Of a DNA stretch of 64,000 nt, positions 21,283 through 61,114 are shown piece after piece. The translations under genes and the position numbers were made by a program. The notes below the pieces were generated by a model. That model ran no database searches and was not told where the DNA came from. It saw only the letters and a program-made list of their open reading frames with translations. Positions within the stretch are counted from its first letter, which is position 1; each line of letters begins with the position of its first letter. This stretch comes from Perna viridis (taxonomy: Eukaryota): assembly GCA_037379345.1 (NCBI GenBank), contig CM074513.1, positions 50,013,195-50,077,194 of the forward strand, written 5' to 3'.

Positions 21283-21678
21283 AATCAGTTCTATGCAGCA
21301 TACATAGGAACATTCATACCAAGTGTGGATTCAATTGTAGTGTCAGAGGAGAAGATATTAGAAAGAAATAACTTTAAAAAAACAGCAAAACTCGTTGAAA
21401 AAAGGCAATAACTCCAACATTACCTAACAACGGATTAAAACTGCAGATATATCTCATCACTGAACAATTTTATCCATGTCAGAATTTAGCTAAACCTAAC
21501 GGTTTTGAGGATATATGCATAAAAAAACAAACAAAACTACTGTCTGACCCCTATGTTCTATTATTAGTAACGAAGGCCATGTTTTCGACGAATCAAAAAT
21601 CCTCACATAAGTTTTATGCAAGATGCCACAAGGAACATTCATTCCAAGTTTGGTTCTAATTAGTCAAATAATTTCAGG
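21283..21678 (+). repeat. Dispersed repeat with internal tandem units (HINE/Helentron-like fragment)
   Basis: ggaacattca(t)-ccaagt recurs ~326 bp apart; homologous to the reverse complement of ~57035-57330. Confidence 0.6.
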
Positions 21679-25259: not shown

Positions 25260-25626
25260 TCGATATCGCCAATCGTCGACTTTCTACGACGTTTCGTCAT
25301 TTACAATGAATATTGCATTTTCTCAGTTACATTCAATCGGTACACCCTCGGCCAATCCCGGTAATGATCGGAATCAACGAGATTGGCCGAAAAGTTGCGA
25401 TTTCACTTGTAGTAAACACTGTGATGCTATAAATGTCACGAATAGAATTTCAATAAAGATGGCGAACTCGCGGCCTTTTGTATAATCTGACTGTTTAATA
25501 TTTAAAAAATACTTTTTTTCTAGACTTGTGTAAAGCATTATGACGTAATACTAAAGCGTCGTGTTGTCGACGTGACGTAATTTTCCAGTTTACCAGCAAA
25601 GGGAATTTCGTATTTCCATCCTTACG
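25260..25626 (+). promoter_or_regulatory. Candidate proximal promoter of the Ig-Sema gene
   Basis: Locally CpG-rich stretch just upstream of the ATG. It holds CCAAT boxes (~25269, ~25352, and inverted ~25382), YY1-like AAGATGGCG (25456-25464), CRE/ATF-like TGACGTAA (25541-25548, 25573-25580) and kB-like GGGAATTTCG (25601-25610). No TSS evidence. Confidence 0.4.
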
Positions 25627-25672
25627 ATGTTTCTTCGAAGTATATTAATTTTTCCTGTTTTGTTTGTTATCA
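25627..25672 (+). CDS. Exon 1, signal peptide MFLRSILIFPVLFVI
   Basis: ATG, hydrophobic core and gtaagt donor in phase 1; joins exon 2 as ...FVISIHG|ELN. Confidence 0.8.
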
Positions 25673-28600
25673 GTAAGTATTCGAAAGTGTTATATATTTT
25701 ATTTAAGAATCGAGTGGTAAAACAAACTTCATGACCTTCTGCAGATCTGACAAAATGTTTCCAGTTTAGATGATCTCTATGCAAATCCATCACCCTATTT
25801 CTACATCTCTTGAGAAGTGGAAAAGAGAATGTTTTGGAACTGTATCAAAATAAAGTTTCAAGCTGATTTTGTGTTGTTTTACTTAAAGACTTGCTCAATG
25901 ATATACAGAATATTACATAGCACTCATCTGTGAACAGAAACAAAAATCGACACGATATTCCAATATACACATTTTATGTACCACACCTCTGGCAACAAAT
26001 TACATTGTACAAGAACATAAAAACAACTTGGAATACCATGAATAGTAAGCAATTCAATTCTTGACAAACAAAGCTACGTTATTGACTTATAGTATCTATG
26101 AAGATAAAAAAAAGCCCTAATAGTTAAACATTTTTTAGCTAACTCCATTACAAAAGGAAACGTATTATGGTTTACAATGTCAATATTCTGTATTTATTTA
26201 ACATATATTTTAGGTATACACGGAGAGTTAAACAGTACACTCTTGGGATCAACTGTAGTATTGTCGTGTGAAAGTATTTCTAGAGCAGATTGGTACGGTC
26301 CTTATGATGGTGGAAGTGTGGAAGTAACATTAGGATTTAATAATATGTTCTCAGGCGAGCTCAGAGAACGAATATTCACATCCGGAAATAAACTATTCAT
26401 CTCTAATATTCAGCCTAGTGATGAAGGGATATATAAATGTAGTGATGGGGAGGAGATTGTATCAACATTCAATTTATCAATACCTGGTAATTTCTTTTCA
26501 TTTTTTCTTCTTAAGTACTTCTCTGTCTAAGAGTCAGGCAAAATATGCATCAGGTGTGGCATATGAAGAAAAAAAAGCGCAGTGATTTTATTGTATTATC
26601 CAAGTATTTATTCTCCATAATCTCCAGAAATATCCATCAAAGTGTTTGTAAAGCCTTTTTTAGATATTGATATGTAAAATTTAGTTGAAATACACTATGG
26701 AAAAATTGCGGGAAATTTTCCCTCGCCTTTTCCTTATATCAGCAGTTAAAAAATATCTATGTTACAGATGCTTCATGATAAATTTAAATCGATCTTCAGG
26801 TGCTTTCTAGATGTATTGAAAATAACTAAATTTGGAAAAATGATGTGCTGCCCATTGCCTGATTCTGACACAGAATGGTACTTCAATGTTCCGTATCTGT
26901 TGTAATCTCAATGCATGATTCATTGATGTACTATCAATTCAGGTTGTACATATGAAACGGCCCTACCTACAAATATAAATAATTAATTGAGTTTTTTGAT
27001 TGATCGATTTTCTTCTATTTGTTTTAAAGTATCATCAGATGAACTAGGAAAAAAGGGGTAAATACACTTATTTCAAGGTGTATTTCAAAATTATGAGAGA
27101 AAGAGAAAAATAAAGTTAACTTTTTTTCTTCGGCTTAAAGAACTTTACATCATAAGTACTAGACAAAAGTGTCGAAGTTGTATGATGATTCTTTATAAAA
27201 GTTATTCCCCTTGAAAAGCGAAAAATGACCTCACTTAGCTTATATTTTGAAAACCATAATAGACACAAATATACCAACTTTCGGTTGATGAAAAGATTCT
27301 TCTTATAAAACCTACATATGTTCTCATAAGTTGCAGAAGGACTCCTTGTTAGAGTTATTACAGAGAGAAATCAAGGGAACCAAGGTTATAGCGGTAATCA
27401 AAAGACAAAGACAAGGACAAAGACCAGACATGAAAAACAAATATACACAACAAAAAACATAAAGTAACTAAAATCATACATACAAAGTAACAAAAATAAA
27501 TGAGCAACTCGGACTCCACTAAAAACTGGGAGCATGGACCAGGTGCACCGGTAGGGTAAGCATCCTCTGCTTTTCTAGAAACACTCGCCGAGTTTCTCAT
27601 AAAAAGTCAAGTCCGGGGTAGACAAAAGAGGAAAGGGAAACAATGACAGGTTGAATAAATCAGTTTTCATGTTGCAGATAGATACAACATAACGATCCAC
27701 GAGTTCATGATGACGACCATAAAACTTCTGTAGTGATGACTTCAATCTTGTAGCAACATAACCCTGTTCCAGAAGCCTATTTGTTAGAGCTCTAGCGCGA
27801 TACAAAAAGTCTGCGTAGTTTCGGCAAGCTGTGGCATAACGTATGAGTTGTGATATGAACATTCCATACGCAGGTGTTGAAGGGATGTTGCCACAGATGA
27901 AATAACGTTTTTGTAGTATTTAGACAATATCTTGAAAACTATAATAGATAGAAAGAACTTTCAACTGATGAAATGATCTTTATGACAAGCCCTACAAAAA
28001 CTTCAACTGAGTCATTGTAAGAAAAGACTTATATGAGGAATTGCTGACATTTGAAGAACCGTAGCAGATAGTAAAAATATCATAGTTGTTGGAATACTTT
28101 TGTATTTCAAACATAAAATATTCGTAAGGCGAAAAAATGAATGCAAGTGGGTGATATGGTTCCTTTAGTGCCTCTAATGGTTTATCTCGTTAGAAATTAA
28201 ATATACGGTCTGTAATATAAATTATTTGGGTATCATTGGTTGATTTTCCTTCCAGCTTTGATGTATTCAAGTGATAAGCAGTACTTTAGACACGTTGAAG
28301 TTGATATACTGATGAAGAAACTATTAGTTGGTTCGATGTAAGCCCTTACGATTATAAAATAACGATTATGAATGTAGATTTTGTTTTAAACTAACCACAT
28401 GCTTTAATATTTTCTGATAAAACATTTCAAATGTACTATGACCTTTCCAAAGGTAGAAACCATAACAACGCATGCTTATAACCCAACTATTTCACAGACA
28501 AACACAATCAAGATAAGCACGTTGACATTAAAAGTTAAGACGTTACGCACGCTATTGCGGCACATTCGGTAACATCAGAATTCGATGTTTGTCGACACTT

Positions 28601-30986
28601 TTCGTTTCTTGCTTGCTTGTTTATTGAAAAACGTGTACAGTAAAGCAAAATATACAATATTTTTTTATTGGTAGTAATTATTTAAAACATCTTGAACATT
28701 TCTTAAAAAATCGAAAAGATTGTTAATCAGTACTACCGGTAAATTAAATTTGCAAATGCGTGGAATGCAACCGCCACATATATGCACGCTATGTCTGTCT
28801 AGAGAGGGAATATAACAACTTACTCCTGCGATAAGTTAAAATGTGCATTTTGATATACATGTATGATTTTATGTTACAAGTACCAATAGAAGAATTTGTA
28901 CCTTTCACAACTTAGTATTTTGATTGAAAGAGCTTTATATCCATCTGAAAATCGGGCTTTCATCAACACCCATTAGATAGTTGATTGATTTTCGTTTCAT
29001 TTGCTCATTTGCGTTTTCTAAAATAAAAAAAAACTGTTTATGACTCCCTTTTCTGCATTCATTTTATCTATTAGCATTCTGCTTTTCTATACATTTTTAA
29101 AGTTCTGTCAACACTGTTTTGCGTTTCCGTCATTCTACTCCGATCGAATTCCTATAAACTATAAGAATTTATTCTATTCTTTTTTTTTTTGGTTTATTCT
29201 TTCGTTTGTTAATAACACAAAATACAGATACTCTTAGTCTTTTTATATCCCTTTGATTTCGATTTTTTTGTCTCTTTCAGTTGCATATTTTCTATACTTG
29301 TAATTGCAAAGACAAGTATAAGTGTCTAGTGCTTGTTATCTAAAGCCAAAATTATTTCCATTTCATTTCCCCATTTCCAAACGTTCAAAAAGTGAAAGTT
29401 TGACAAATCGCTAGACATTTGCTTTGTTCGAATTTTACCCATTTTAAACGGTTAAAACCATAAAAATGAAATGTGTGTATTCCTAAGTGTATGTACAATT
29501 ACAAAGTATTATTATTTCATAGAATAAATTGTCAATTGATTGTAGAATTGCGTTGGAGCATGACAATTTCTCAACGGACCCCGAAAATATTGACATATGA
29601 CATTTCGCTAGACATTTTCAAAAAGACGTAACTTTTTTGCTTGTAATGAAAATATTATCAAATGTCGACGTAGCATTGCTGAAAGTATGTACATTTTTAG
29701 GAAATATTAATCGGAAAAGAATATTGTGTAAATAAGTTCTTACATTATTAACAGATTTTGGTTACTGAACACTTTTAGAAATCTGACTATTTACCAACAC
29801 TTTCATTTTTGCATTGAATATTTTTTTTGCCTAAAATTAACGCAATTTCGATAATTATCTCCAAAGGAACATATGATATTATTCATCCATGCAAAGTTTG
29901 GCGAATTCCGTACCCTCTGCAATAGCGCAATTCACTATTTTAGCTTTTTTGAACCTACACTGTGTTACACATGACAATTTTGACGTTTTTTTTTACGAAT
30001 TTTTGGAAAGTTTAATGGATTATAAAGAATTAGAAGTACCATTTGTGACAAATATTCAGAACTTATTATTTGTCCTGATTCCAACAGTATACAGCTTTCA
30101 CATAATCACAGTTTTGATACTGTTTTAATCGTCATTTATAGTTTAGATAGGTGTGTTTTTTCAACACAGCGGCAATAGCGTGCGCGACGTCTATATGAAT
30201 TCGTTACGTCTTATCGTGTTTTGGTTCCATGCGGACATTTTTGTCATTACACCAATTGAAGTATCTCTTTCAAAATATAATTGGGGGGGGGTATGTTTCT
30301 TGTATGAGAGGAACTTTCTAATTAATTCATGCCTTTTATAGGAACAAGATATCAGTAATAGATTTGTCGCCACCCATGAAAAAGGTAATTGTCATTCTCT
30401 TATATATAAAATACCCGCCTATTCTTGCCTGCCTATATTCAACGTAAATTTTTACTTTATATAGACACCAGTGTAGTATATCAGATACATGCTGATCACT
30501 ATATTTTAACAAATATAACATTTTCACTAGAACCAATGTATTTAAAAAGATATTTACACTGGACGAGTTGGAATTGTGGATCCTCATACATTGCATGTCA
30601 TGCAGTGCAGCTTCCCTGAAGCGGTACAAAACAATTCATGTCACTTGCAATAGGTACTTTGTGAGGACAACATATGTTTTGTGCATATTTTAAAAGAAAT
30701 AATGTCCTATCGAACATAGATACTACTGAATGAGCTTGTCAGTGTTCTGGGAAAAAAAACACAAAGAAAAAACATATTTGTATGTGTTATCCCGTTTTCG
30801 ATATGTTATGTGTTGAGGGGTTTCAGTAGATTTCCCCTTTCCCGAGTTTTAATATTGTAAACATTATATTTGTGTTTATATTTCAGATAAGTAAAAATAT
30901 TCCTGCCAACAGAAATAACGTAGACAATTGTGTATTATCGCATACTCGGGTACGCTTTCAAATTTTATATGTTAGAACTTAGGTAC

Positions 30987-31019
<33 letters not shown>

Positions 31020-34000
31020 AGATATTGCGAAACGTAACAATTGCTCCAGCATAATGTATAACGTTATTCCAAAACTGTACATATGTAATACATAATTTTT
31101 CTAAGATTATAATTCTTTTATACTAATGGTTTTGATCAGATGTGGCGGGGGCTTGTTAGGTTAAATCGAAAGACATACACATTTTAAATCCATTATGTTA
31201 GATCTGTGTTTTGTCCGTTTCTAGACTCCATACTGTCAAAATCACATCAGACTTTTAGCTAAAGTATCGGACACTATATGGAAAGTGTGTGGAACAAACG
31301 GTGGCAGTCCAACAGGATACCAGTTCAACATTACTGGTGGCTTTTACGAAGAAACAGAAAGTGTTCCATGTTCTAACGATCCTTTCCACAGCTCTACAGC
31401 GGTTTTTGTTGGTAATCCTCCTTGATCAATGTAAACTTGCTGTAAATCTAATGTTTATCCTCGGTCGTTTAATGTAAATGGATCAGGCAAAGTCCACTCT
31501 GCGACAGGCATTCAATAAACTGCAACAGACGTTTTAACCGTAAATCAAAGAAGTGAACATTGAAATGAGATTAAAACGGTATTTGAAGATAAGGATGACT
31601 TAAACATTATTTGTTTGTTCTCTATGATAGATAGTTATATGCCAACAAAGTTTTATATTTACCCAAAAGCACATAATCTACTTTCTAGCGGTTACAGGAA
31701 GTTTGTTTTTCATAAATCACAAAACTTGAAAACCAAGTATGCTAACTGTTGAAATGATTTTCCTTTTGAATTCCCGATGAAAATAGTCCTATAATGGACA
31801 GATTGCAATTGAAGAAAATGGACTTTTCATCAATCCATGTTTCCACTTTCTTGGAATTTTTACAAAAAACGATGATTCAGATTTGAATGAATATAATTGT
31901 TTGGTCATTTAAACAGTTTTAAAAAATTTAGTCCTTGACCACATTTTGCTTAGATAATCAATGTAGGGACACTGCATGCTTGTCCATTTTGTCCCAAAGT
32001 TAGTCATCTCGCTTTACTTATTTCATGATTGAATACAATTCTGAAACCCAAATTTATTCATTATAGGAAGTTTGTCTTTGACATATTTGGTCATTAATTC
32101 ACTTTAAGCCAATAGTGGATACAAAAAAAAATGAAGCAGCTAGAACTATTCAGGATAAAATTTACATGTACTGAACTTAAAAATCAAAATTTCCAAAATT
32201 TTATTTATTGACCTTTAAAATTTCGAATTAAAGATGTTAATCGATTTTAAGCTTTTTTTTCTCAAAATTGAATAGATAACAGATTATTCAGTTCGCTGTA
32301 GGTTCTTATATTACAATCAATATGTGCATCTGGTTAAAGGTTGGACACCCGCAGTCGTATCAAGCTACGCCCTTAGGAATATATTGATTTAAGATGTATC
32401 TAACTTGGTCATAAACTGTGTTAGATTAGCGATCAATTAGTCTATGGATTGTTTTGCCTCTTACATTTTCCTGTTTGATAGTCATCATTATATGGTTATA
32501 TTGTGGGTGTTTCACTTTGACAATTATACATGTATACGTAGTTTCGGACACTTAACGACATCACGTTTTGATCTGATCTTATGTACAAATGATCTTAAGT
32601 AGCGTACACTTGTAAGTAAAACATTCACGAAAACATTCTTGTAAGTTTGAATAATCTCTGCTTGAGTTTCATTGTATTTCTTTCCTTCAAACGTTCATCT
32701 TATGGAAAGGCATTTGAACAACATGTCACCCAAATTTGAAGTATCGGAATTTCTAATAACTTAACAAGTTTTTTGCAGAGCCTCTACAATCCGGTGGTAG
32801 ACCTCACATTTACTATGGCTCCGTGTATTACTCTGACCGAACAATACAAAGACCAATATACAATACAGCTGGATCCATCCGGGAATACATGAAAGGTGTT
32901 GATAGCAACAACTGGATGAAAAGTATGGCCATGGAACAAATTAATTTTGTATACTGCATAATTCAACTGAATTTAACTAAGTTTGACTTCCACTTGCGAC
33001 AAAAGTTGTTTCAGACTAGTTTTTGTGTGTATTTGTTCACCAAGTGAACTCTCATAGAGTGGTTAATGTTCTATAATTTGATTTTTTTTTGTCTTCAACA
33101 AGGAATACAAAAAGATGAGCAGACCGAAATACCTCATTGTATTACTGTATTGAATGGGTACAATGTGATCAAGGACTTTTGATTTTTTAGTCACTACATA
33201 AGATACATGTAAATACAAATTGTAGATGGCTTTGATCGTATTGATCATTTGATGAAGGTTGGAAGTTTATAAAGGTCCGGTTATTTCTTGATTTCACCAA
33301 TAAAACGGTAGTGTATATCGAGGTTCGTATTACATTAAACATGAAAGATAATAATTAAACAGGACACAGCCTAATTATACGATTTTGTGTTGTGTTGAAC
33401 ACTCGTGATTGGATAAAACCATTCGTTGACATAACTGAAGCGGCAATATGAAAACGAAGATGATACATAGAACTTCTATCCGACATTGAAAACAATGGTT
33501 GCAGAATCAGTCTATGACGTTGAGACTAATATAGCCACGTGAATATAACTCAATCAATGAAATGACGCACGATAAGTGTGCACTTTCAAATAATTGGGCA
33601 TGGATGTCGTGACAATGACAGTTCAATCACCCCACCGGCCAGTGGGTACAAATTTTATATGGACGCCAAGACAAAAACAGTCTTTACCTACGAAAGATAT
33701 TCAAAAAATATTGTTTGATGCAAAGATTTATTTATTTCCCCATAAATCGTACAAAAATGTTATAACCTCCCGTAATCGTCTCTAATTATTTAGATAGCCA
33801 GTAAATGTGTTGGAGGGATTCGGCTAACGCCTCACCTTCCAGCATAATTTACTGACTGTCTTAATTACCGAAGACGGTCGCCTCGGAACTGGATAGATAC
33901 TAGATAGTAAATACAATTGTCTCTAAACACAGTAAATGATTGGTCAAGGTATACATTGTTTTTATTTGTTTACCTATTTAAATTTTGTTTACTTAAGTTA

Positions 34001-37000
34001 AATATTTAAAATATGATAAAATATTCTAACTAAAGACAGTTTGGCTTTAGTAAAATTTGTTTATTTCTTGAAGCTTTTTGTGTTTCCACTTCTTTCAGAT
34101 CCAGAATTTATAGGATCGTTTGAGCTAAATGACACTGTGCTGTTTTTCTTCCGAGAAGAGGCTGTTGAAGTTGACCAAAAGAACCCTAGAATATACTCAA
34201 GGGTAGCTAAAGTCTGCAAGGTAATGTACACAACCAGGTTTTTTTCGAGGACTAATTATTGTAAATATGAATTACAATTACATGTACCTAAGAAAGGATT
34301 AGGCAAAGAGCAACATTTAATTTAAAAGTCTGGAAACAGTGCTGCAGATTATTTTCAATCTGAATATTTTATTTAATGGAAGGCATCTTTTAAAACATTT
34401 TTTTTCTTGGTAAAAGATATATTTGTTGATATAAACATTCAATCAGTATTCTATATTCTATGTTTACAAAGGGTAAAGCAGAATGAGGTCTCATCCTTGT
34501 TCTAGAAACAAATCCAAATTTTACGGTATGATAGTCAGAATACTGAGCCACTTTTCATCGTTTTCAATTATGCTAAAACATTGTACATACATACATATTA
34601 CTCATTGATTGATTTCCCCGGACAAATCCAAATCAATTTACTTTTTTTTTGGAGATTGAGGCCTGGGTCATCAAGTTCAGAGGTACACATACAACAACTG
34701 TTTTCAATTATTATTGAAAAACTGTACCCATTGTTAGTGTAAGATGTATACTGTATTGATTGTGACTTCAGAAAGACAAAGGTGGAAATACTCAACTTAG
34801 GAATAAATGGACCAGTTTCCAGAAGGCTAGACTTACTTGTTCTACTCACGGGAAATACCCCTTTTACTTTGACGTATTACGTAGGTAGATTCGAGTATGT
34901 AGGTATGCTTATAAAATTCGCCGTGTAATTTACGCTTTTTAGCAGAGTATTGGATGTGTTGTACTCAGATTGTAACGAAGATCAAGGTTAATAGTCCAGT
35001 GTACCAGCATACAATACATTTGTAGTTCCTGAAATATTTTGTATATCATTTACAAGTCTGGGCACAGATTGGTATATGCCGAGGGGCAAGTATGGACGCA
35101 ACCTGGTATTGCCCAAAGAGCAAATTTGAACATACATACGTTTTGTCTTGAAAGAATAACCAATGATAACTAAGATTCTATATCATTAAATACATCAAGA
35201 GGCACTGTCAGTATCATTTGGTTTCAGAACCACATAACATGTATGTACATTCAGCATAAAACACTGTTATTAACTTTTCTTTACGATCTTTATTTGTATA
35301 TAAATAGACATTTGATGCAAGAAGTTGGAATTCTGTTCTTTCATACCCCAAGCCAAGTCAGAAAAAAGCTTGCCAGACAATCTCTAGCGCTACTGGGGTA
35401 ATTAATAAATAGACCATCCGTTTAGGCCTAAAAATGTTTCCGGTCACCCTACACAATGACCCACATTCACCGGTTTGACTATGCCCGGGGGTTTGTAAAC
35501 GCCTTGATGCTTTACACCGTCCGTGAGAGACCCCAAACGATAGCCAAGGACGTTAAGAAACATCTCAGTCCATCGTGTATTACACATATGAATGCAAACA
35601 GGGTCTATCAGTATTGAGTATATACGTTAGCACGAAAACGAAAATTAAACCAAGCAAAAGAACAGACAGCTAGTGGTCAGCGTCACTCATATCGTACAAA
35701 TGATTGGCTAACACTGTGTTACCAAAGATTTTTGGGGATTTTAGTGGTTTATAACCACAAAGACAGTCGAATTATCTCATAGAAGCAACCATGTTCTAAC
35801 TTTATAATGCATGAAATGAAGTAACGGATATACGGAAAGTGCTATCATTTTCAACTTTATTGTTATAGTGTTATTTAAATACTGATATAACTGGGCCTAA
35901 TTCACTCATGCATTAATCAAATATCCATGATTATCAACCAAACAATACAAACAGCGCTTGACGTTCCCATTGCCAAAGAAACATATTTTTATTTTGTAAT
36001 ACTAGAGACTCTGTGACGATGTTGCACTTTTTTACTCTTTACCATCCAATATCTCAGAATTATAATCCAAGAGTATGTAATAACATGTTTATAGTCATGA
36101 TATAATCAGTTAGTGTAATAACATGTATAGTCTCGATACATACTGAAAATTACATGCTAAATCTGTATCATATGCTTTACCAACCAAAGACTAGATATCA
36201 CCCCAAGTCCACTAGGCCGAGGAGTGATATAGTCGAGAATGGATACGGCATTGGATACAGACTTTGACATGTCATGTTCACTTTGTCACATATTTTAACT
36301 GTACTTAAAGTGTGTTCCGAATAGGTGTGCAACATAGGCTTAGGGCTGCGATATAGGTCTAGGGGTGTGGTAAATTTATGCGGTATAGGGTTTAAACAAT
36401 CACTTATAATGCATATACAAAAAAACCGTATACTTTACCTTAAATATATGATTTAACCAGTTAATGTAAAACCATATGTAGATTTAATATAACCAGTTAT
36501 TGTAATATCACATGCAGTCAAGATATAACGGGTTTTTATCCTTAGTTAAAACTTTAATTTAATAAATTGTACTTTTTTTACAGAGGATGTCGTGACAGCG
36601 GACAAGGTCACGTTTTATGCACTTTTCACAAGGTACATTCATGTTTATCTGTGAACATTATACATATTCCTTACCCATGCCTGCCATGAAAGTATCAAAA
36701 TCGTGGTATCATAGCCTGTATGAACTATGTATCGACATCGATGTACATCAATTTACCAATGTTGATATTACATGTACCACCGATTTTATTACAATTGCGG
36801 TGTAATTTAGTAAGGGTGCTTCGTTTGTATCTTTTTTATTCTTTTATATTTATATGTATCCGTGTATAACGATAAGAGAAATCACTGAATTAAGTTCGAA
36901 ATACCCTTATTGTACAATGCTATTGTAAAAAGATATGTAACTAAAAGTGACCAATGTAATTTTGTTTGTGAATTTAAGGTAGTAGACCTGGGTACCCCTA

Positions 37001-40000: not shown

Positions 40001-43000
40001 ACTAGGACAATCGTGGGCAATGTTCCCTTAAAACCCCTTACTCCACCTTTCGACCTCAAAATTGATTTGGAACGATCTGTTAGATGAGAGGTACATACTG
40101 GTAGTGGTAGTATGTAATGAAGATTTTTTGACAGTTTTATTAAATTTGATTAGTGGTGTTGGAGGAGTAACAGATAAGAGATGGATAACCCTCTTTGTAA
40201 TGGAAGGGAGGGAGTACGAACGGATGGACGGACACCCTATACCCCCACTTGTAAATATAGCATCAACAGACAAGCAAACATTTCCAAACAATCAGATCCG
40301 GGCATCAGACATTAATATTTCATTTTCATAAACTCAACATAATATATCTTTAAATGCTGTCATAATTGTTTCGAAATACATTGTAAGAGCATTTGACTTA
40401 TATTGTTTTTAACGGGGTGTTAATTTGATTCCACTTTTATTGGAATGGTCCAATGTCAATGTATAAATCTCATCATTATTAGGGTGAACATGTGTACATA
40501 GGAACTGACCATTCAGTCCAAGCCGTACAGGTTATAAACTGTGACCAGTACCGTTCTATCAACTCATGTATCAAAGATCCACACTGTGCCTGGATTAACA
40601 ACACCTACCCGATACCTAACGACCAATGCTACAACAGGTGCCGCTCTCTTGCGTATGTTACAGAAAGTGGATATTTGTAAGTAAATGTGATTGTTTTGTA
40701 ACAAGCCATGTTGCCAATCATGTATTTTCCAAAATATTACCAAATAATGTTTCAGCAGTCAGAAATATATTGCCATGTTAGATTAAGTAGCAGTCCGCCT
40801 AAGAATCATGCAATGTGTGATTTATCGATGTCAGACATTTGAACCAAATTGACAATCTGTCGGATATAATGGAAAAACAATAAATAAAATAAAAAAATGA
40901 AAAATATTTTCACCTTTACCATAGCAACGACCACTCCTTAGCAACTACCTTAAATTTATTTCGGACAAAAACACAAAAACATCACAATTTGAATATAATT
41001 TTATTTATCTAATCGTTGAAATTTGCCAAACTACATAATTATATTAATGAAATGTGTCTTAAGAAAACAATTTCCAATAAAGTACAAAGCAAACTGGATC
41101 TGGATCTGGTTGCCACAGCAACCAAAATTGTTAATTTTTGACATTTTGAAATATACGAAAATAAACCTCAAGGTCAAATAACGTACAAATTTTGGCAGAA
41201 TATGATACATACTTTTGTCTGTGCCATTTCTTTTTTGTCTTTGATCTTTGGCATTTAAGTATATCACACCAAGGCCAGTCTGAACATAGCCTATTTTTGT
41301 ATATTTTAAAGTGTCAAAATTTAGGTTGCTATCGTAACCAGATCTAAACCAATTAGATTGCTTTGTTCCTTATTGTAAATTATTTTCCTAAAGACACACT
41401 TCATTAATATAATAATGTAGTTCGACTAATTTACCATTTAATATATAAAATTACATTAAAATTGTGACATTTTTGTGATTATTCGGCCCTAAATTGATGG
41501 TTGCTAAGGAGTGGTTGTTGTTATGGTAACGGTGAAAATATTTTTCAGTTTTTCATTTTATTTATTATTTTCCAAGAAGTCCAACTGATTTAAAGTCAAC
41601 TTGTATAAAATATCTGATATAAAAAATCATTTACAGTGAAAATTGCATGATTCTTAGGCGGACTGCTACTTAAAAGTAGATAATCTTTTGATAACTTTAT
41701 TTTCTTAATTTCATTAAAACTTTTGTTTAGAAACATGTTCGTCTTTGGTTTAAGTGACAAACCTTTTATGTTGAAGTTAAATTCTGTTCATTGTGCAACT
41801 TGCAATTTATAATAAATAACTATAAAGCATAATGATTTAAATCACACTATCAGTTTTCCATGTCAATCCTTGTATGTGAAATTTGTTTTTTTCTAGGGAT
41901 TTTTCTTATACTTATACTAATAGTGACCTGTCCGATTTACAACTATCATGTAAGTAAGAAAGTATCTCTGCTTTGACATTATCTGATAAAATGATTTCAA
42001 AAAATGGACAAAATATACGAGAATTAAGGGTTCAGCATAATGAGTTTCACTGACTGTGAAATCGGATTTTTTTGTCCTAAAATCAGTGAAAGGGCCTACC
42101 ACCTACAAAAAATAAATAACAAGTCAATGTTAACTTGTTTATGTTCGTGAGGTGAAAAGTAAGAGAGAAACCAGGAGTAACAGGCAATTCTTAACCTGGT
42201 AATGTAAGGAGAGAAATCAAAATTAACAGCCAATATTTTACTTGGTAATTTGGTAAATTATAATGGTGAACATCTAAAATAACAGCCACTACTTACATGT
42301 ACCTGGTTATGTTCAGAGATAAATTGTAATGGTGAACACCATAAGTAACAGCTAATATCTTATCTAGTCATGCTAGGGGGTGAATTGTAAAGGTGGACAT
42401 CTTGGTAAAATATTGTATTTTCAGGTCCACCAGAAACACCACTGCACCTTGGATTAATTAATGTATCGTCGTCTTCAATCACAATTAAGTGGACACTTAG
42501 TAAAGGAAATAACCAGACCATAGTTATCCTGTACAGAATTCGTGGAAGTTCGTGGGAAAGTGTTAAATTTAATTCATTTATAAATAACAGATATACGATA
42601 AAAGAATTGACTCCGGAAATTTTATACGAAGTTAAAATTTATAGCACGAATTCAGTGGGAAACAGTTCGATTTCAGAGTCGATATTTGTTGCTACTCTGC
42701 CTTTTGTGGAAGAAAGTAAGATTTAGTTCAACTTCTTTCTGCAAATTGGAAGTAAATATATCATACATGAATAATAAAGGAATAAGAGTAAAAATATTGT
42801 AATATTGTGATTGCTTTTTATGTTTTAAAGATGAAATTAAGGTAAATTAATACCTTTTTTACTCTTATCGCAGTTTAAAATATTCACGCTGTTAGATTCT
42901 AAAACGCAGCTATTTAGCTATTGGTGACCACTTCTGCAGTTCAAGTTTAAATATTTTCTAAATATGCATGGCTGTTTATTTTCGGTTGGCATTGTTGTAT

Positions 43001-46000
43001 TTAAGGTACCGACGTGTTGCTACCTCATACAGAAAGACCAATAAACGACGTAACACAACAGTCTAAAACCACAGGTAATACATACTATTTTTATTTTAAA
43101 AACAGAAGTACAAAATATACATCAACGAGTAAACTAGGAAACTATGCCAAAATATTCTTACCTAATTTGATAAAAGCAAATACTGGCGAAAAAATTAAGT
43201 ACTAGTATACTAGTACACATAAAATTCAGACTCTGCTAATGGTAAAGTGGTACATGGTGAAGAAAAAACCCACAAAACAAACGATGCTTTTTCAGTCTAC
43301 CTATGGTATACTTTCACATAACGCTTATCATTTCTGCATTCAGATGTGCACTTTTTAGAAAATTATACAATTATCGTCCACTAACATCAACCAAATGAAG
43401 AACGATACCTGTCGCAAAGTTCCAAGTTCATGTACAATCTATATAATTCTTATCTCAAAAGCGCAACAACCTAATAAAAAAGGCTAAGACTGGTTATGTG
43501 AAAAGCTTTTGCCTGCACTTAATTTTGCCAATTTTTTTTAATTGGTTTTTTATTTATTTTTTTGAGATAAAATACATCCAGTAGAGGCATAAATGATGCT
43601 CTAAAATGCTATCTCCGCGGAGCTTCGGGGCGGGGGGCTTCGCCCCCTTTGTTCCCCTACTAGGGCTCTGCCCTGGACCTGCTAGGGGCCTTAAGCGGCC
43701 CCCCAGACCCCCTGCCGTAATTTTGCCTACACTTCAATTTGGTCTCAGCTACGCGCCTGGTAACTGTTTCTAAGAAATCAAAGTAAATTCGGTGGGTTTT
43801 TGACATGCATGCATCACCTTCAGTCTGATTTCTCGAAAGACTGCTACTTAAAATAGCTAATATATTGATTACATGGTGCTTCAAACCTGATTAATAAAAG
43901 TATTTACAGACTTACAACTTTGTGAATTTAATCTCAAAGTAGTACCGTATATTAATTGCAAAAATGCATTATTGTCTACCCCGGACTTGACTTTTTATGA
44001 GCAACTCGGCGGGTGTTTCTAGAAAAACAGTGGACGCTTATCCTACCAGTGCACCTAGTCCATGCTCCCAGTTTGTAGTGGAGTCCGAGTTGCTCATTTA
44101 CTTTTGTTACTTTGTATGTATAATTTTAGTTACTTTATGTTCTTGATTGTGTTTGTCTGTTTTCCATGTCTGGTCTTTGTCCCTGGATTACATTCTTTTG
44201 ATTACCGCTATAGCCTTGGTTCCCTTGATTGCTCTTGCAAATACATAGCGTAAAACTAATGACGTCTTTGTGAACAAAAAGTGATTTAAACACAGTTGTA
44301 AGCTTTTCTCGCAGTGTGTATTTTACATGCATGTTCGTGTCATATTCAATACTTTTCGGCACAATATTTCACAATATTCATACATTAACCCTGATAAACA
44401 TATATGCGGCAGTGTTTCTTGTTCTTTAAACATTTCATTTTCTTAAATAGCATAAAACGTTTATCTGTTTCTTCAATTCATACTACCATCAACAAAAGGA
44501 ATCACGTCAAATAAGAGGTACACACATAACTGAAGCTGTGACATATATCAAAATTTTAAAACGACAGTCAAGAGCAGAAATATAAGCAATTGAAAAGCTT
44601 AGAGATCATTTTCAATGATAGTTCGAATAATGCTATTCTATTTCTTTTTATTACAGTTTCATCAATAACGGAATTCTCAGTTCATTTCTCCAAGGGATCA
44701 CCTCCAGTTAAAGGTAGGGATGATATTTGATAGTTGGCATGTAAGTAAACTGTCGATGAAACAAAGTCAGTAAACACCAAAAAAAGACAAAAGACAAAGA
44801 GCATATAGCTTAACATAAGAAACTAAGAAATACATACAGAAGCAAACAACAACTACTTAAACTACAGGGAACCTACAAAACACTGGTTGACATGTCAATG
44901 TTCATGTCAGGTGATAAAGAAAGAGCATCATTTACAGGTGGGGCTCCTGTTTCATATGAGATAACCATAGTCAATATCGGATAAGGTAATCATATCATGC
45001 TTACGACCGTACAAAACCTTACAGCATACAAAACAATTATCTACGACAAAAGTTTGTAAATATGAGAATTCTATATTTTACAAATTTATCATGGACGAAA
45101 ACATATAAGACAGTTTTCTTTGGCAATTTATAGAATGGGCCTATGAAAACCTTTATCACTGTTTTCTGCTATTATTTGATTAGATGCCATCGACTTCCTT
45201 TCCAATGTACATAAGGAAGTCATAACAGTAATTAAAGAATGATATGATACATTTTTTTTGTACAGAAGTTTACTCCATCATGTGTAGAATTTTTTTTATT
45301 TTATTCATCACTTTGCTACAGGGACATTTGATATTGAAAAGGATCGATTCACTTTATACAAGTTTCAGTCATATCCTCTATGGTTTATTTAGTCTATGGT
45401 AGTTTATCAAGTACGCCATTGACTGTTGATTTTTATACCCCCCCCCCAATTTGCAAAGAGGGTGTATATAGTGGTAGGGGTATCCGTCCTTCACAGTGGT
45501 ACCTTACGGATATCTGTTACTCCTCCTAAACCACTAGATGCAATTGTATGAAACTTTCATAGAGTCTTTTTGACATGTTGCCATCCGGCACCTTTTGTTT
45601 AAGATTTTGATCAAAATCAATTTTGGGTTCCATAAAGCAAAACATAGATCTTGTCGTGTTAGAATAAAATGAACATTTGTTTCTCCTTCTTAACCCCTGA
45701 ATGGAATTGAGTCTTTATCACATGTTCCCATTGTACATCATATTTTAGACTTTGCGCCGATTCAATTTGGAGGTCAGTAGGTGCATGTTATCAAATGGGG
45801 GAGTGAAGGGTATCAAGTTAATGAGCATTGCTCACAGTTTTTCTAGTTATATCTTCTTTCGAGTGATGTACATGTTTTGCTTTAAAATTAAGCTCTGATT
45901 CCGATGTATGCTAAACGCATTTATGTTTTTTAATCGGGTTTCCTATTAACTTAAACCTTTGTAACAGTATTAGTGGAACCAACCCTTATAATTCCCGATA

Positions 46001-49000
46001 ACCGAAAAATAGATATGATATGCATATAACTTAACCAACATAACGTGAGCATGGCACATTCAAGCCGTTCCTTTTTTTGACTGATTGTTTTTTTTTATTT
46101 CTTTGTTAACTTCTAATGGATATAGTAAGTAGTTTTGACTGATTGTTTTTTTTTTTTATTTCTTTGTTAACTTCTAATGGATATATAAGTAGTTTTAGTT
46201 TGTAGTTTGCATCTTCTGTTAGTCTGCCAATTGCTTCCGTTATATCGTTTACGTTATGATTATTCATCTATATTTTGCTGTATTATTGTTACTTTCGTAG
46301 CAGCACAGTCTGGAGGTACTAATTCAGCTACTGATCAAGACTCATGGAAGCATGCTTTCATATCTTTGATAGTCCTCGGAGCGCTGTATTATTTGGGGTT
46401 CGCTATCGTACTGGCAATAGCAAATTGGCGGAAACAATGTGAGTTTCAAGTAGTTTTCAATCTCCTATTCACTGGATTAGTTTACTTTAATTAAACTTTG
46501 TAAGTTAACAGCTGTCAAAATAGCCTATAAATGGGTTAAAAGCAGGTTAACTACATTTTCACGTAAACATTTTAAATATTGAATAACGCATGCCATAATA
46601 CTCTAACGATCAAAATACTTATCAAATAAATTGTTAAGACACTAGACGAATTATTTAGGTTGTATATGTTTAAAAGATGAAAAACTTTATTTTAAATCAG
46701 ATTGTTTCATCTGTTCAAATAATACTTTCATGTTCATGAACCGTGGCCTTCTTTGCGTGTAATATTGGTCGTGGTGTACTAGGCTTTAATCCTTGACTAG
46801 TAATAATTTCGCAAATCATAGACACATGTTTAATCAAGAAATTATTTTAAAATTGTATTAGATGCTCAAACTGGCGATGTTGAAGGAAATGGAAATAATG
46901 TTAAAAGTAAGTCTCTTACAAAATGCTTTGATAGTAGTAAATTTCTTAACAATTTTTTGTTCATTAAGCACCAGCAACAAAAATAAAAAACAAACGTTGG
47001 AAAAATACTGACGTGTAATGTGAAGAGAAATACATTTACACTCAATATTGTTTATTGATTGAAAGTTATGTTTTGTTATGTATGGCGTAGGCTGATAAGT
47101 TATCGACCGAAAATCTGCATAACTGCCGCAATTTCTTCCACAAATGAGTTTTTGGATAAAAACTCCATATTTAAGACTTGCTGGATTGTTGCTTAACAGA
47201 AATAAGCTGTAACCAGGATTCGTTCTATGTTGAATGTTGTGTTAGGCTTAAATCATTTGACGGATGTAATCAAGGCCTTCAATACTAAAAATCTCTTGTT
47301 TTGTTGAATAGAACTAAAAATGAAGATTTGAAAATGTTAAATTTTTTTTTTCTTTAGAAGTAAAAAGCCTGCGAAGAAAACCTGATGGCAATAGCAATTC
47401 ATTGGTAGGCTCTTTTGTTCACTTTTTGAATATTTGATCTATATAGCATTTATGATAACCGATTAAAAAATTGACGAAGAACTGAAATAACAATGCGATA
47501 AATATTCTTTTTAAGCAATCAAATAGTGAGAATTAATCAGACAGTAGTCATTCCACTGATTGCTCATATTGCCAACACTTTGATCCAGAGTCGGAGAAAC
47601 TAGGTCAAACACAAAACCATTACTGTGGCAGTGACGTCGGAAGCGACATGAAAATTTACTGTAAATGAACAGAAATAAAATCAAATAGTATAAAACTAAC
47701 AAAGGAAATAATTTCATTTGTCATTTAGCTTTCTTATCAGGCAGAGGTCAGAAAGCTGCTTAGTTCTTGTTATAGAGGTTCATATGATATCAGAAGCAAT
47801 GGTAAGTCTTTTGACGCAGTGAAAAAATATTTTTTGTTTTCAACGATATTTTCACCTTTTGTATTATTACTATAGACACGTTATTGACCATGTACATTTC
47901 TGATTTTGAACAGATAGATCATTGATTTTGTATAACGGAAAATTATCTTGAATGACTGAAATATAAGTAATGTCCTTTTACTAAAGATCTCTACTTTAAA
48001 ATTGTTTACGAAGTTTGCTAATTGAATGTAGATAACTGCTTTGAAACTAGTTTGCCCTAGCATTTCACATCTAAATTTTAGTAGATCTCTTGATACATAT
48101 AAGACAGAATGTGAAACCCAACAGAAATCATTTATATACCTATTTTAGAAACAGTTAAAGAACACATAACCAGTTCTAGTTTGACACTGGCTTGTTTTGA
48201 GATAAAAAATAAATTGATTGTATGTGGAAATGGCAGTTTACAAGAACTTTCGTTGCTTTGTATATAGTTTTCTCCAAAATTTAGATCTGTATACTAACAC
48301 GATGAAAATGAAACATGCATAATATGGCTATGTAGACCAAAAAGGCCTTTACCATGGGAAGTGTCTTGTGATACTTTAAATAACAATATCTTTCCCTTTT
48401 TATTTGGAAGTATTTACTTCGAAAATAAAACCTAGTTAAACCTTGTGTAGAACAGTGATCTATAATCAAGGTGTAAGGTAATGGGACATGCAAGTCTTGT
48501 CTCGTGGTTCGGTGATTTCAGGAGAATGGGTCCCAAATTCCCATTGAAAAGCAAACGAAATGGTTGTTTACAGAGTAAAGACTGCTCTCTTATCAACGAA
48601 AATCCCTTATCCGTAAATATGATAATAACATTATGATACTGTTTCACGGTAAAATTAGTATGGTAATACATGTAATACAAAATAGACTTCTGGTAACTAA
48701 TCAGCGTACAAGTGTCCTTGGAAGTAATTCAATACAAATCCGTCGCACGTTTTGAATGTAAAACTTCCGAATAAAAAATAATCATGTGCGAGACTTAGAT
48801 GCCCTAAAAGATCAAGCGAAGACCCAAATAGTAGTTTACCCTTAGAACAATAAAAACACAGAATAACAAATAAAACGTGACAACATATTCGTATTCCACA
48901 AATGTTAGTTGGAGTGATCGATGTCAGTTTTACTTAATCTATTACGGATTTAACATTTTCAAAACTGCAAAGATTTGTTGTAACTGTAATACAAATCAAT

Positions 49001-49251
49001 TCAGAAATCTTTTCTGATGCTTATCAAATTGGTCTATTGTTTACCCAAAGACAGAGTTACTAACGAACTTTATGTTTCTTTCATATTGAATTGTCTAAGG
49101 ATTTATTTTGAAATTTGTTTTAGAACTTAGTTAACTCATAGAACACATATCTAATATTTGAACCATTTGTTTTAAATGCAATTGTATTGTAGAAAATGGA
49201 CAAGAAAATGGAGTCCCATGTGAAAATCCGGACGAGGAGGATCGACTTTAA
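25627..49251 (+). CDS. Semaphorin-like type I membrane protein, 22 coding exons, 833 aa: signal peptide - Ig - Sema - PSI - FN3 - TM - cytoplasmic tail
   Basis: join(25627-25672,26214-26486,28256-28337,30342-30384,30887-30949,31225-31411,32779-32922,34099-34220,34772-34880,36584-36632,38713-38854,39005-39185,39669-39784,40483-40676,41897-41949,42425-42715,44657-44713,46301-46438,46862-46906,47358-47404,47741-47801,49193-49251) = 2502 nt. All introns are GT-AG, phases are concordant and there is no internal stop. Sema motifs: LLVGS, [75 protein letters not shown]. Confidence 0.9.
26214..26486 (+). CDS. Exon 2, Ig domain
   Basis: GSTVVLSC...DWY...LFISNIQPSDEGIYKC shows the B-strand Cys, C-strand Trp and DxGxYxC; phase 1-1, 273 nt. 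Confidence 0.9.
27362..27902 (-). mobile_element. Naiad-type Penelope-like element 3' fragment, copy D, in intron 2
   Basis: ORF 27575-27862 (RT C-terminus) plus the shared 3' UTR; sits inside an older tandem-unit repeat (~27090-28060). Confidence 0.9.
28256..28337 (+). CDS. Exon 3, start of the Sema domain (ALMYSSDKQYFRHVEVDILMKKLLVGS)
   Basis: ttttccttccag acceptor, gtaagc donor, phase 1-2; LLVGS corresponds to semaphorin LYVGA. Confidence 0.8.
30342..30384 (+). CDS. Exon 4, Sema (NKISVIDLSPPMKK)
   Basis: ttttatag acceptor, gtaatt donor, phase 2-0. Confidence 0.75.
30887..30949 (+). CDS. Exon 5, Sema (ISKNIPANRNNVDNCVLSHTR)
   Basis: tttcag acceptor, gtacgc donor, phase 0-0; supplies the first conserved Sema Cys. 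Confidence 0.75.
30989..31018. repeat. Poly-A tract of about 30 nt in intron 5
   Basis: Read directly from the sequence. Confidence 0.9.
31225..31411 (+). CDS. Exon 6, Sema ([11 protein letters not shown]...VCGTNGGSP...PCSNDPFHSSTAVFV)
   Basis: tttctag acceptor, gtaatc donor, phase 0-1; CxNxIR and VCGTN motifs. Confidence 0.9.
32779..32922 (+). CDS. Exon 7, Sema (EPLQSGGRPHIYYGS...SNNWMK)
   Basis: ttttgcag acceptor, gtatgg donor, phase 1-1. Confidence 0.8.
33783..33867. repeat. Imperfect palindrome, Crypton-like core
   Basis: Arms agatagccagtaaatgtgttggagg and ccttccagcataatttactgactgtct around cggctaacgcctc. Confidence 0.55.
34099..34220 (+). CDS. Exon 8, Sema (NPEFIGSF...FFFREEAVE...YSRVAKVCK)
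   Basis: ctttcag acceptor, gtaatg donor, phase 1-0; strongly conserved semaphorin motif. Confidence 0.95.
34772..34880 (+). CDS. Exon 9, Sema ([36 protein letters not shown])
   Basis: cttcag acceptor, gtaggt donor, phase 0-1; DxGG...WTSFxKARLxCS motif. Confidence 0.95.
36153..36271. repeat. Imperfect palindrome, Crypton-like core
   Basis: Arms ...tctgtatca...gactagatatcac and gtgatatagtc...gatacaga around ccaagtccactaggccgagg. Confidence 0.5.
36584..36632 (+). CDS. Exon 10, Sema (QDVVTADKVTFYALFT)
   Basis: tttttttacag acceptor, gtacat donor, phase 1-2. Confidence 0.85.
36974..37775. mobile_element. Kolobok-type MITE in intron 10 (TTAA target site duplication, 15-bp perfect TIR starting GG)
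   Basis: TTAAggtagtagacctggg ... cccaggtctactaccTTAA. Confidence 0.85.
38126..38266 (+). mobile_element. tRNA-derived (Pol III) SINE-like head
   Basis: A box tggtggagtggt and B box gagttcgagtcc with a non-tRNA spacer; second copy at 59190-59307 on the - strand. Confidence 0.65.
38713..38854 (+). CDS. Exon 11, Sema (SGISASAICAY...PSPRPGQ)
   Basis: ttttcctag acceptor, gtgggt donor, phase 2-0. Confidence 0.93.
39005..39185 (+). CDS. Exon 12, Sema (CSDDSLTLPDATLEFIANRPLMYENV...VFYVAS)
   Basis: ctttgtag acceptor, gtaagt donor, phase 0-1; LPDxxLxF...PLM motif. Confidence 0.92.
39669..39784 (+). CDS. Exon 13, Sema (NQGVIYKLF...IWSIKQF)
   Basis: tttttcag acceptor, gtaagt donor, phase 1-0. Confidence 0.85.
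40483..40676 (+). CDS. Exon 14, end of Sema plus PSI (VYIGTD...CDQYRSINSCIKDPHCAW...CYNRC)
   Basis: tattag acceptor, gtaagt donor, phase 0-2; PSI motif CxxY...CxxDPxCxW. Confidence 0.9.
40783..41673. mobile_element. TTAA-flanked MITE with long terminal inverted repeats in intron 14
   Basis: 32-bp perfect inverted ends ttaagtagcagtccgcctaagaatcatgcaat and attgcatgattcttaggcggactgctacttaa, plus inner inverted blocks (~40895-40950 vs ~41495-41550). Confidence 0.9.
41897..41949 (+). CDS. Exon 15, PSI end/linker (DFSYTYTNSDLSDLQLS)
   Basis: tttttctag acceptor, gtaagt donor, phase 2-1; bridges the phases of exons 14 and 16. Confidence 0.75.
42175..42405. repeat. Degenerate 50-65 bp minisatellite immediately upstream of the FN3 exon
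   Basis: Recurring taacagccaatat..tacctggtaat and aattgtaatggtgaaca units. Confidence 0.65.
42425..42715 (+). CDS. Exon 16, fibronectin type III domain
   Basis: PPETPLHL...SSSSITIKW...ILYR...W...YTIKELTPEILYEVKIYSTNSVGNS; phase 1-1, 291 nt. Absent from the ORF track. Confidence 0.92.
43578..43759. mobile_element. GC-rich MITE-like repeat fragment
   Basis: ggggggcttcgccccc...agggctctgccctggacc...gctacgcgcctg, a hairpin-rich motif typical of invertebrate MITEs. Confidence 0.55.
43971..44236 (+). mobile_element. Naiad-type Penelope-like element, 3' UTR only, copy E
   Basis: Near-identical to 6547-6811. Confidence 0.88.
44657..44713 (+). CDS. Exon 17, stalk (ISSITEFSVHFSKGSPPVK)
   Basis: tttattacag acceptor, gtaggg donor, phase 1-1; frame-neutral, so inclusion is not forced. 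Confidence 0.6.
44745..45030 (-). mobile_element. Old, divergent Penelope-like 3' remnant
   Basis: On the - strand aggttttgtacggtcgtaagcatgat resembles the KFYGRHHD terminus; followed by a T/G-rich UTR. Confidence 0.4.
45429..45850 (+). mobile_element. Helentron/HINE (DINE-1/pearl-like) non-autonomous element
   Basis: 5' tttttatacccc, then tatccgtcc and tgaaactt core units, ending ctcacagtttttctagtt. Confidence 0.55.
46075..46195. repeat. Tandem duplication of about 58 bp in intron 17
   Basis: ttttgactgattg(t)n atttctttgttaacttctaatggatata..taagtag occurs twice. Confidence 0.9.
46301..46438 (+). CDS. Exon 18, transmembrane helix (AFISLIVLGALYYLGFAIVLAIA-NWRKQ)
   Basis: tttcgtag acceptor (NAGNAG), gtgagt donor, phase 1-1; 23 hydrophobic residues followed by basic residues. 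Confidence 0.88.
46862..46906 (+). CDS. Exon 19, cytoplasmic (YAQTGDVEGNGNNVK)
   Basis: tattag acceptor, gtaagt donor, phase 1-1. Confidence 0.65.
47358..47404 (+). CDS. Exon 20, cytoplasmic (KVKSLRRKPDGNSNSL)
   Basis: Poly-T tract then tag (NAGNAG), gtaggc donor, phase 1-0. Confidence 0.65.
47741..47801 (+). CDS. Exon 21, cytoplasmic (AEVRKLLSSCYRGSYDIRSN)
   Basis: ttcttatcag acceptor, gtaagt donor, phase 0-1. Confidence 0.65.
49193..49251 (+). CDS. Exon 22, terminal coding exon (ENGQENGVPCENPDEEDRL*)
   Basis: tattgtag acceptor, phase 1, TAA at 49249-49251. Confidence 0.6.
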
Positions 49252-60810: not shown

Positions 60811-61114
60811 CTAAAAATACGTTCAACACATTAAGTTGTTATATTATACAAACTGCAATAGAAAAAAACCAAACTTTTGAAACGTTCCAGCAAATAACTT
60901 AAATCTAAATCAATAAATGTCTTCAAAGGGCTCCAACTTGTGTAAACAGAGCTTTAACCAGCTCTGAAAGGGTGTCGTCCTGGTTTTCTCACTTTTAATT
61001 GCAGGCATTAATAAACATTGGGTGTTGTGTTGTTTAACAATTAAAGTTTGTTTCTTATATGTAGTTATTGTTTACTTGTAAATTCTTGTATAGATTTTTA
61101 TGACTATTGACATC

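Follow-up and report, generated by a model that had tools for sequence, protein, structure and literature searches.

The window analysed here is a stretch of 64,000 nucleotides from the genome of Perna viridis (C3:50,013,195-50,077,194 of the 723-Mb assembly), with the composition of AT-rich animal DNA (GC about 0.33). On its plus strand, between positions 25627 and 49251, lies a series of short open stretches whose translations bear semaphorin motifs, and which an original prediction, made from the letters alone, had joined into a semaphorin with an unusual order of domains. We modelled the gene by listing the AG and GT sites around the stretches conserved in relatives, and by tracing the codon phase from exon to exon. 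From the ATG at 25627 to the TAA at 49249-49251 the exons are bounded by GT-AG sites and their codon phases are concordant: the 15 exons in the interval 25627-42715 splice into an open frame of 697 codons, with a polypyrimidine tract and AG at each acceptor and a GT, mostly GTAAG-like, at each donor, while five further exons, from the one encoding the transmembrane helix onward, close the frame at the TAA, giving 20 exons and 817 amino acids in total. The encoded order is signal peptide, immunoglobulin (Ig) domain, Sema, PSI, one fibronectin type III (FN3) domain, a short stalk, a transmembrane helix and a tail of ~74 residues. Judged from its sequence, this Ig-Sema gene is a real, intact, multi-exon, membrane-anchored semaphorin. 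Each coordinate named in the original prediction was reproduced (25627-25672, 26214-26486, the start at 28256, the end at 41949, 42425-42715 and the stop at 49249-49251); the count of 22 exons and 833 amino acids was not, the difference from the 20 exons and 817 amino acids recovered here being exactly 48 nucleotides. The joined model was used for the frame check, the local alignments and the tree; database searches were carried out with single exons or with homologues from the databases.

The Ig domain is encoded by exon 2 (26214-26486), a symmetric phase 1-1 exon of 273 nucleotides, identified by Pfam, by comparison with the PDB, by an AlphaFold 2 (AF2) model and by the position of its donor in the paralogues described below. 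The Pfam calls, made exon by exon for all domains, are V-set with E 7e-5 and Ig_3 with E 9e-5; among solved structures the exon matches Ig domains, as an example that of DCC with E 1e-7. In the family alignment the core residues G11, C18, W26, D69, G71, Y73 and C75 are invariant. The AF2 model is a beta-sandwich (predicted local distance difference test, pLDDT, 72), for which a structure search returns Ig-fold matches at a template modelling score of about 0.6, and in Mytilus members of the family the Ig domain lies above the Pfam cut-off. Exon 2 has both the fold and the Cys..Trp..DxGxYxC core of the Ig superfamily, and the proposal that an Ig exon follows the signal-peptide exon and precedes the first exon of Sema is confirmed by Pfam, PDB and AF2 together with codon phase.

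That this exon is part of the semaphorin gene follows from codon phase, from the paralogues, from proteins of other species and from spliced transcript contigs. Exon 1 (25627-25672, 46 nucleotides, phase 0 to 1, donor GTAAGT), which contains the start codon and a signal peptide with a hydrophobic N-terminus, ends in phase 1; the Ig exon runs from phase 1 to phase 1; exon 3 (28256-28337, 82 nucleotides, phase 1 to 2), the first Sema exon, begins in phase 1. Exon 3, which is collinear in paralogues A, B and D and matches the library proteins P0023 and P0129, has neither a start codon nor a signal peptide, and a scan of intron 2 gave no signal-peptide-like first exon that would fit its phase. When the Ig exon was used as a query against a library of 1.8 billion proteins, the informative matches were only P0023 and P0057, the other matches being mostly giant multi-Ig proteins; the top match (P0001) was set aside, as it is only an open frame predicted on a contig of genomic DNA. 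P0057 is the Mytilus californianus protein XP_052099535.1, annotated as 'semaphorin-2A-like isoform X2', whose 782 residues comprise an N-terminal Ig, Sema, FN3 and a transmembrane helix. In nine more Mytilus proteins, from five species, a V-set domain at about residues 23-120 is followed by Sema and by 1-3 or more fn3 domains, several of these calls being above the Pfam cut-offs. A Mytilus coruscus protein of 499 residues annotated as a C3H1 zinc-finger (P0181) also begins with 108 residues that are an N-terminal Ig of the type found in this family, scoring 97 bits with the Ig profile of the family; the gene model has probably been joined wrongly.

Two Logan contigs from species other than P. 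viridis run through the Ig domain into Sema. The first (L014, 2676 bp, SRR30826388) encodes a signal peptide, Ig, Sema, PSI, FN3, a stalk rich in serine, threonine and proline, a transmembrane helix and a tail, and is the closest relative of the P. viridis gene (73-75% nucleotide and 57% protein identity); the second (L015, 2713 bp) has an uninterrupted frame of 849 amino acids that falls in the same 90%-identity cluster as Mytilus edulis XP_071167145.1. Since a gene of ~20 exons appears in each as a single open frame on a contig of 2.7 kb, both derive from spliced RNA. The blocks matched by L014 end at the exon borders of the P. viridis gene (for example at 32922|34099 and 34220|34772), and the motif at the junction of exons 2 and 3, FN[LV][ST][IL]P-AL, is contiguous in this cDNA. 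Like the P. viridis protein, the Mytilus and L014 homologues carry a transmembrane helix.

The Ig-Sema gene is one of four tandem copies on chromosome C3. A search of the whole assembly with the Ig, Sema and FN3 exons recovered three further loci (C3:49.93, 49.97 and 50.12 Mb), all on the same strand, where the matches recur in the same order and with similar spacing; the succession Ig, Sema, PSI, FN3 is kept in each. Across the four genes of the array 13 exons are collinear, and in every one of them the Ig exon has its phase-1 donor immediately behind FN[LV][ST]IP; this collinear recurrence in three paralogues puts the exon series far beyond chance. For paralogues A, B and D spliced alignment gave partial models only, which were not included in the tree. 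The Ig and FN3 exons of A and B are almost identical to each other, and the FN3 exon of D is nearly identical to theirs (L005-L013); this suggests that members of the array were duplicated very recently or have undergone gene conversion.

The Sema domain begins in exon 3 and extends over the exons that follow. Exon 4 (30847-30949, 103 nucleotides) is placed by paralogue matches and the phase chain; exon 5 (31225-31411, 187 nucleotides), which contains the conserved C..CGTN motif, is 66-73% identical to the paralogues and has 73% nucleotide identity to the L014 cDNA; in exon 6 (32779-32922, 144 nucleotides) the L014 match stops at the exon edge. Exon 7 (34099-34220, 122 nucleotides) and exon 8 (34772-34880, 109 nucleotides, 74% identity to all paralogues) equal in length exons of the canonical Sema2A gene that P. 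viridis also has. The junction of exon 9 (36584-36632, 49 nucleotides) reads as in P0023. Exon 10 (38713-38854, 142 nucleotides), with matches in the paralogues and elsewhere in its own genome, and exon 11 (39005-39185, 181 nucleotides), which starts at the conserved cysteine after PRPGQ and again has the length of a canonical Sema2A exon, both match the seven-bladed Sema propeller of Pfam (PF01403) above the cut-off, with E 7e-11 and 1.5e-7, respectively. The last Sema blade is encoded by exon 12 (39669-39784, 116 nucleotides), for which the evidence is paralogue matches and the phase chain, and the end of Sema and the PSI domain (PF01437, E 1.4e-3, 19.3 bits with a cut-off of 23.1) by exon 13 (40483-40676, 194 nucleotides), which is 54-58% identical to the paralogues. 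All 12 Sema/PSI cysteines are kept as far as insect Sema2A; the protein has, as expected of a semaphorin, a Sema domain and directly after it a PSI with its cysteine framework.

Between PSI and FN3 there is a linker of 17 residues, encoded by exon 14 (41897-41949, 53 nucleotides), whose phases fit and which was located by spliced alignment to P0057. Exon 15 (42425-42715), a symmetric phase 1-1 exon of 291 nucleotides collinear in the paralogues, encodes the FN3 domain (Pfam fn3, E 2.4e-10, 40.9 bits with a cut-off of 25), in agreement with the claim of an FN3 exon after PSI. The phase left by this exon is continued by exon 16 (46301-46438, 138 nucleotides, phase 1-1), which encodes the short stalk, a hydrophobic helix of 23 residues and then the basic stop-transfer residues W-R-K-Q; both this helix and a DQ(D/E)xWK motif can be aligned to the cDNA L014. 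In the cytoplasmic tail, the putative exon 17 (46862-46906, 45 nucleotides), chosen for the best splice sites and for phase, and the putative exon 18 (47358-47404, 47 nucleotides), with strong acceptor and donor, a fitting phase and a weak likeness to the L014 tail, form the sole phase-compatible link with good splice sites between the transmembrane exon and exon 19. Exon 19 (47729-47801, 73 nucleotides, donor GTAAGT), which has an alternative acceptor at 47741 and a motif common to L014, and exon 20 (49193-49251), which encodes the acidic C-terminus with an ENGQ motif common to the end of L014 and then the TAA, align with the tail of that cDNA.

Some other features of the window can be mentioned here. 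Frames derived from transposons are present on both sides of the gene and in several of its introns. Two copies of TGACGTAA (CRE-like half-palindromes), at 25541-25548 and 25573-25580, lie 32 bp apart and 47-86 bp 5' of the ATG, and could be a promoter element of the Ig-Sema gene. A repeat-derived frame starting LFM.NSA.VSRK occurs in intron 2 (27361-27919, minus strand) and in intron 15 (43991-44250, plus strand), as well as in the flanks at 6566-6906 (plus), 20710-22091 (minus) and 61075-61412 (minus); it recurs in the paralogue loci and looks like an abundant interspersed element of the P. viridis genome. The flanks also hold long frames of retrotransposon type (endonuclease- or reverse-transcriptase-like) at 5659-6528 and 8098-12300 (plus), 22115-23509 (minus) and 53286-55911 (plus), the longest of which has 467 amino acids (10206-11606).

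Semaphorins bind plexin, usually as a homodimer. Those of class 2 are secreted and have the order Sema-PSI-Ig, with Sema first after the signal peptide. In the sequence of Sema and PSI the mussel proteins are nearest to this class (Drosophila Sema-2a/2b, PDB 6QP7/6QP8; the mollusc 'semaphorin-2A-like' proteins of ~689 residues). Searched against solved structures, P0057 finds Drosophila Sema-2a (6QP7) as its best match, with E 1e-69, as compared with 8e-36 for Sema4D and 1e-23 for Sema7A; the match to 6QP7 starts at residue 118, leaving the signal peptide and the Ig outside, and residues 118-593 align with solved semaphorins. In contrast to class 2, the Ig of the mussel family precedes Sema, an FN3 replaces the C-terminal Ig, and a transmembrane helix and cytoplasmic tail are present, so that the Ig-Sema gene has neither the secreted form nor the single Ig after PSI, with Sema first, that characterize class 2. 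The vertebrate classes 4 and 7 and the ctenophore Sema-IG likewise combine Sema, Ig and membrane attachment, but in these the Ig comes after PSI, none has an FN3, and they are farther in sequence than class 2. Plexins and MET/RON are likewise type I membrane proteins, which begin with Sema and PSI; unlike them, the mussel protein is without IPT repeats, GAP or kinase domain, and has one FN3 and a tail of ~74 residues. By sequence and by its position in the tree it groups with the ligand-type semaphorins.

The layout Sema-PSI, FN3, transmembrane helix is that of the Sema-FN class. The statement in the original prediction that FN3-bearing semaphorins are described from choanoflagellates is right as to these organisms, but the class is known from a sponge and a placozoan too (PMC6374515). 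The accompanying statement, that Sema is the first extracellular domain in the known classes, meets one precedent for a preceding domain, outside animals: choanoflagellate Sema-FN1 has a Reeler domain before Sema, stated to be 'not found in metazoan semaphorins' (PMC8011033). The mussel proteins resemble Sema-FN in being membrane-bound, with Sema-PSI followed by FN3, in having a domain before Sema, as Sema-FN1 has with its Reeler, and, in L014, in a stalk rich in serine and threonine. They differ from it in their independent origin, in an N-terminal Ig instead of a Reeler, in one to few FN3 domains as opposed to 5-7, and in having no SEA domain.

The relationships of the family were studied with a maximum-likelihood tree (IQ-TREE) of 40 proteins and 709 columns, in which support was measured by ultrafast bootstrap and by the Shimodaira-Hasegawa-like approximate likelihood ratio test. 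The P. viridis protein pairs with L014 (100/100), and both form a clade with all the Mytilus Ig-Sema-FN3 proteins (100/100). The sister of this clade (100/100) consists of proteins of ~687 residues, including the Mytilus trossulus 'semaphorin-2A-like', that are without N-terminal Ig or FN3. Both clades lie inside the Sema2A of pteriomorph bivalves (95/93) and of molluscs (100/99), which in turn adjoins insect Sema2A (99/99). P. viridis also has a canonical Sema2A gene, at C3:21.98-21.99 Mb (21980400-21990600; L016, L017), with the C-terminal Ig exon retained: it is 28 Mb from the Ig-Sema gene, with which it shares chromosome and strand, its partial model falls in the canonical clade, and it has exons of 122, 109 and 181 nucleotides, the lengths of exons 7, 8 and 11 of the Ig-Sema gene. 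Another gene with a Sema domain is found at C3:11.24 Mb on the minus strand. The proposed check by a phylogeny of the Sema domain found the family nested in Sema2A at 100/100 support, which places its Sema domain in the class 2 clade. As the tree is read here, the Ig-Sema-FN3 family is a derived branch of Sema2A in the mussel lineage and not an independent class; what the original prediction called an undescribed, lineage-specific semaphorin class is upheld as an undescribed lineage-specific type, on the evidence of the four copies, the Mytilus proteins, the transcripts and the 100/100 clade. By the branching order, the family arose through a duplication of Sema2A that is younger than the divergence from scallops and ark clams but older than that of P. 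viridis from Mytilus. Because it is nested in mollusc class 2, the FN3 stalk and the membrane anchor are secondary gains.

The exons of the added modules (Ig, 273 nucleotides; FN3, 291; transmembrane, 138) are all symmetric and of phase 1-1, which is the pattern expected of exon shuffling. A relocation of the C-terminal Ig of Sema2A to the N-terminus was considered as a source of the Ig but is not supported by the sequences: a hidden Markov model of the N-terminal Ig scores the canonical C-terminal Ig domains at 15 bits or less (about 5 for those of mussels), and unrelated domains of the Ig superfamily at 20-28 bits. In a Foldseek search with the model of the N-terminal Ig, Drosophila Sema-2a came first (E 3.8e-4), marginally ahead of antibody and RAGE Ig domains.

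Conservation differs by domain. The Sema of P. viridis is 63% identical to that of L014, 45-51% to the Mytilus family, 43-44% to canonical mussel Sema2A and 35-37% to scallop and insect Sema2A; the corresponding values are 42% (L014) and 31-37% (Mytilus family) for the Ig, and 48% and 28-35% for the FN3. Between Mytilus paralogues the Ig is 39-53%, the FN3 35-72% and Sema 57-83% identical, while between orthologues the Ig is 80-93% and Sema 86-95% identical: it can be seen from these identities that the added modules diverge fastest after duplication.

Several other explanations of the locus can be weighed in the light of these results. The junction between exons 2 and 3 was derived in P. viridis from genomic sequence, and intron 2 is 1.8 kb long and contains a transposon fragment; it could be supposed that a small secreted Ig gene (exons 1 and 2) had been merged with a semaphorin gene downstream whose first exon was missed. 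We consider such a merger extremely improbable: the Ig exon does not close with an in-frame stop but with a strong donor whose phase (1) suits exon 3, the latter contains neither a start codon nor a signal peptide, intron 2 gave no signal-peptide-like exon of fitting phase, both the L014 cDNA and the M. edulis contig read across the junction, and the same arrangement is present in four paralogues. The Ig exon is nonetheless symmetric (phase 1-1, 273 nucleotides), and skipping it would preserve the frame; an Ig-less isoform made by skipping exon 2 is possible in this sense. It is a stronger proposition that the Ig exon is an optional cassette, with a main product consisting of signal peptide, Sema, PSI, FN3 and transmembrane helix, and the Ig form as a minor isoform: the presence of the Ig in both transcript contigs, which come from other species, and in every full-length Mytilus model checked, together with hallmark Ig residues so nearly invariant across the family as to argue for constant use, makes this rather unlikely.

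Another hypothesis takes the P. viridis gene for a duplicate that is decaying or silent. The tandem array holds four copies, the evidence for this one is genomic, and the related L014 cDNA has an in-frame stop; but none of the 20 exons is interrupted, the splice sites are canonical and every structural cysteine is kept, and a Sema 63% identical to that of the nearest relative fits constraint, so that we judge this hypothesis to be very unlikely. Finally, the order Sema, PSI, FN3, transmembrane helix is the same as in the ancient Sema-FN class of choanoflagellates, sponges and placozoans, and placozoan Sema-FN1 likewise has a single FN3 (PMC6374515), which could make the mussel family a surviving member of that class. 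The family is nested at full support in bivalve Sema2A beside the canonical Sema-PSI-Ig genes, it has exon lengths in common with the canonical Sema2A of the same genome, and its FN3 is on a single phase 1-1 exon. From this nesting, in a tree composed without Sema-FN sequences, the family does not appear to share common descent with Sema-FN, and we give its survival from that class next to no credence.

The reading that we prefer, and hold with considerable confidence, is that of a type I membrane semaphorin, a mussel offshoot of Sema2A rebuilt with an N-terminal Ig, an FN3 and a membrane anchor. Some observations count against it and should be kept in mind. In P. viridis itself the splicing of exon 2 to exon 3 is supported by phase, by conservation among the paralogues and by cDNAs of other species; for exons 17 and 18 of the tail the support comes from phase and from the splice sites. 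Enumeration of GT-AG chains between FN3 and the transmembrane exon and in the tail produced no convincing pair of extra micro-exons totalling 48 nucleotides. The Pfam scores of the Ig exon and of PSI are under the gathering thresholds. The Sema region of L014 is interrupted by one in-frame TAA (L014:1386-1388), the frame being otherwise intact to the end of the contig; the stop may reflect a nonsense allele, transcription of a pseudogene or a fault in the assembly, and the copy or allele concerned may have lost its function. An AF2 model of the whole of P0057, made with 21 family sequences, is too poor (pLDDT 52; predicted template modelling score 0.44) to place the Ig on the propeller or to serve in a search by fold. 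A prediction of a complex of two copies of the P0057 Sema-PSI region (score 0.01, with the mark at 0.32) weighs neither way on dimerisation.

The preferred reading of a rebuilt Sema2A can be put in the form of a succession of events. A canonical secreted Sema2A gene (Sema-PSI-Ig) would have been duplicated in the mussel lineage; in the duplicate, an FN3 and a membrane anchor would have taken the place of the C-terminal Ig, and an Ig exon would have entered the intron that separates the signal-peptide exon from the start of Sema. The predicted mature N-terminus is the Ig domain, a few residues before a propeller of class 2 type. By analogy with class 2 and membrane-bound semaphorins, the Sema domain would still engage plexin, probably as a dimer, and the membrane tether would make a formerly diffusible cue dependent on contact, as is the case in classes 1, 4, 5 and 6, while the tail, with its motif common to L014, could by the same kind of analogy signal in reverse. 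The Ig and FN3, which diverge fastest between paralogues, may provide paralogue-specific recognition or co-receptor binding. For the Ig, the roles suggested in the original prediction (adhesion, immune recognition or a modulation of plexin binding) would be candidates. A more far-reaching proposal, which we regard as unlikely but not negligible, is that the Ig has changed the function: the tandem Ig-Sema-FN3 proteins would be recognition receptors of the mussel cell surface and not, or not only, ligands of plexin, signalling through their own tails with a specificity set by the fast-diverging Ig and FN3. If so, they might have roles in, for example, haemocyte, self/non-self or settlement recognition.

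In our protein searches the full architecture occurs only in Mytilus, in the species of L014 and in the P. viridis genome, and a literature search, with most subscription journals outside its coverage, returned no paper on mussel Ig-Sema-FN3 proteins. These proteins are already public under automatic names ('semaphorin-2A-like', 'uncharacterized protein'), so that what is new is their description and not their sequences; the names are misleading, and the gain is one of recognition and description and not a new kind of molecule. Surveys of semaphorins assign to protostomes only classes 1, 2 and 5 (PMC6374515, PMC10084454). The mussel family contradicts both this restriction and the absence of any domain before Sema in metazoans. 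It represents a secreted class 2 cue that exon shuffling would have remodelled, giving it a membrane anchor and a new Ig at the N-terminus, and suggests that the Sema-PSI-FN3-transmembrane layout, which has been regarded as ancestral, can evolve a second time. As a natural experiment, the family could be used to learn how an extra domain N-terminal to the propeller affects dimerisation and plexin binding, and it is a candidate for an expanded family of surface receptors in bivalves.

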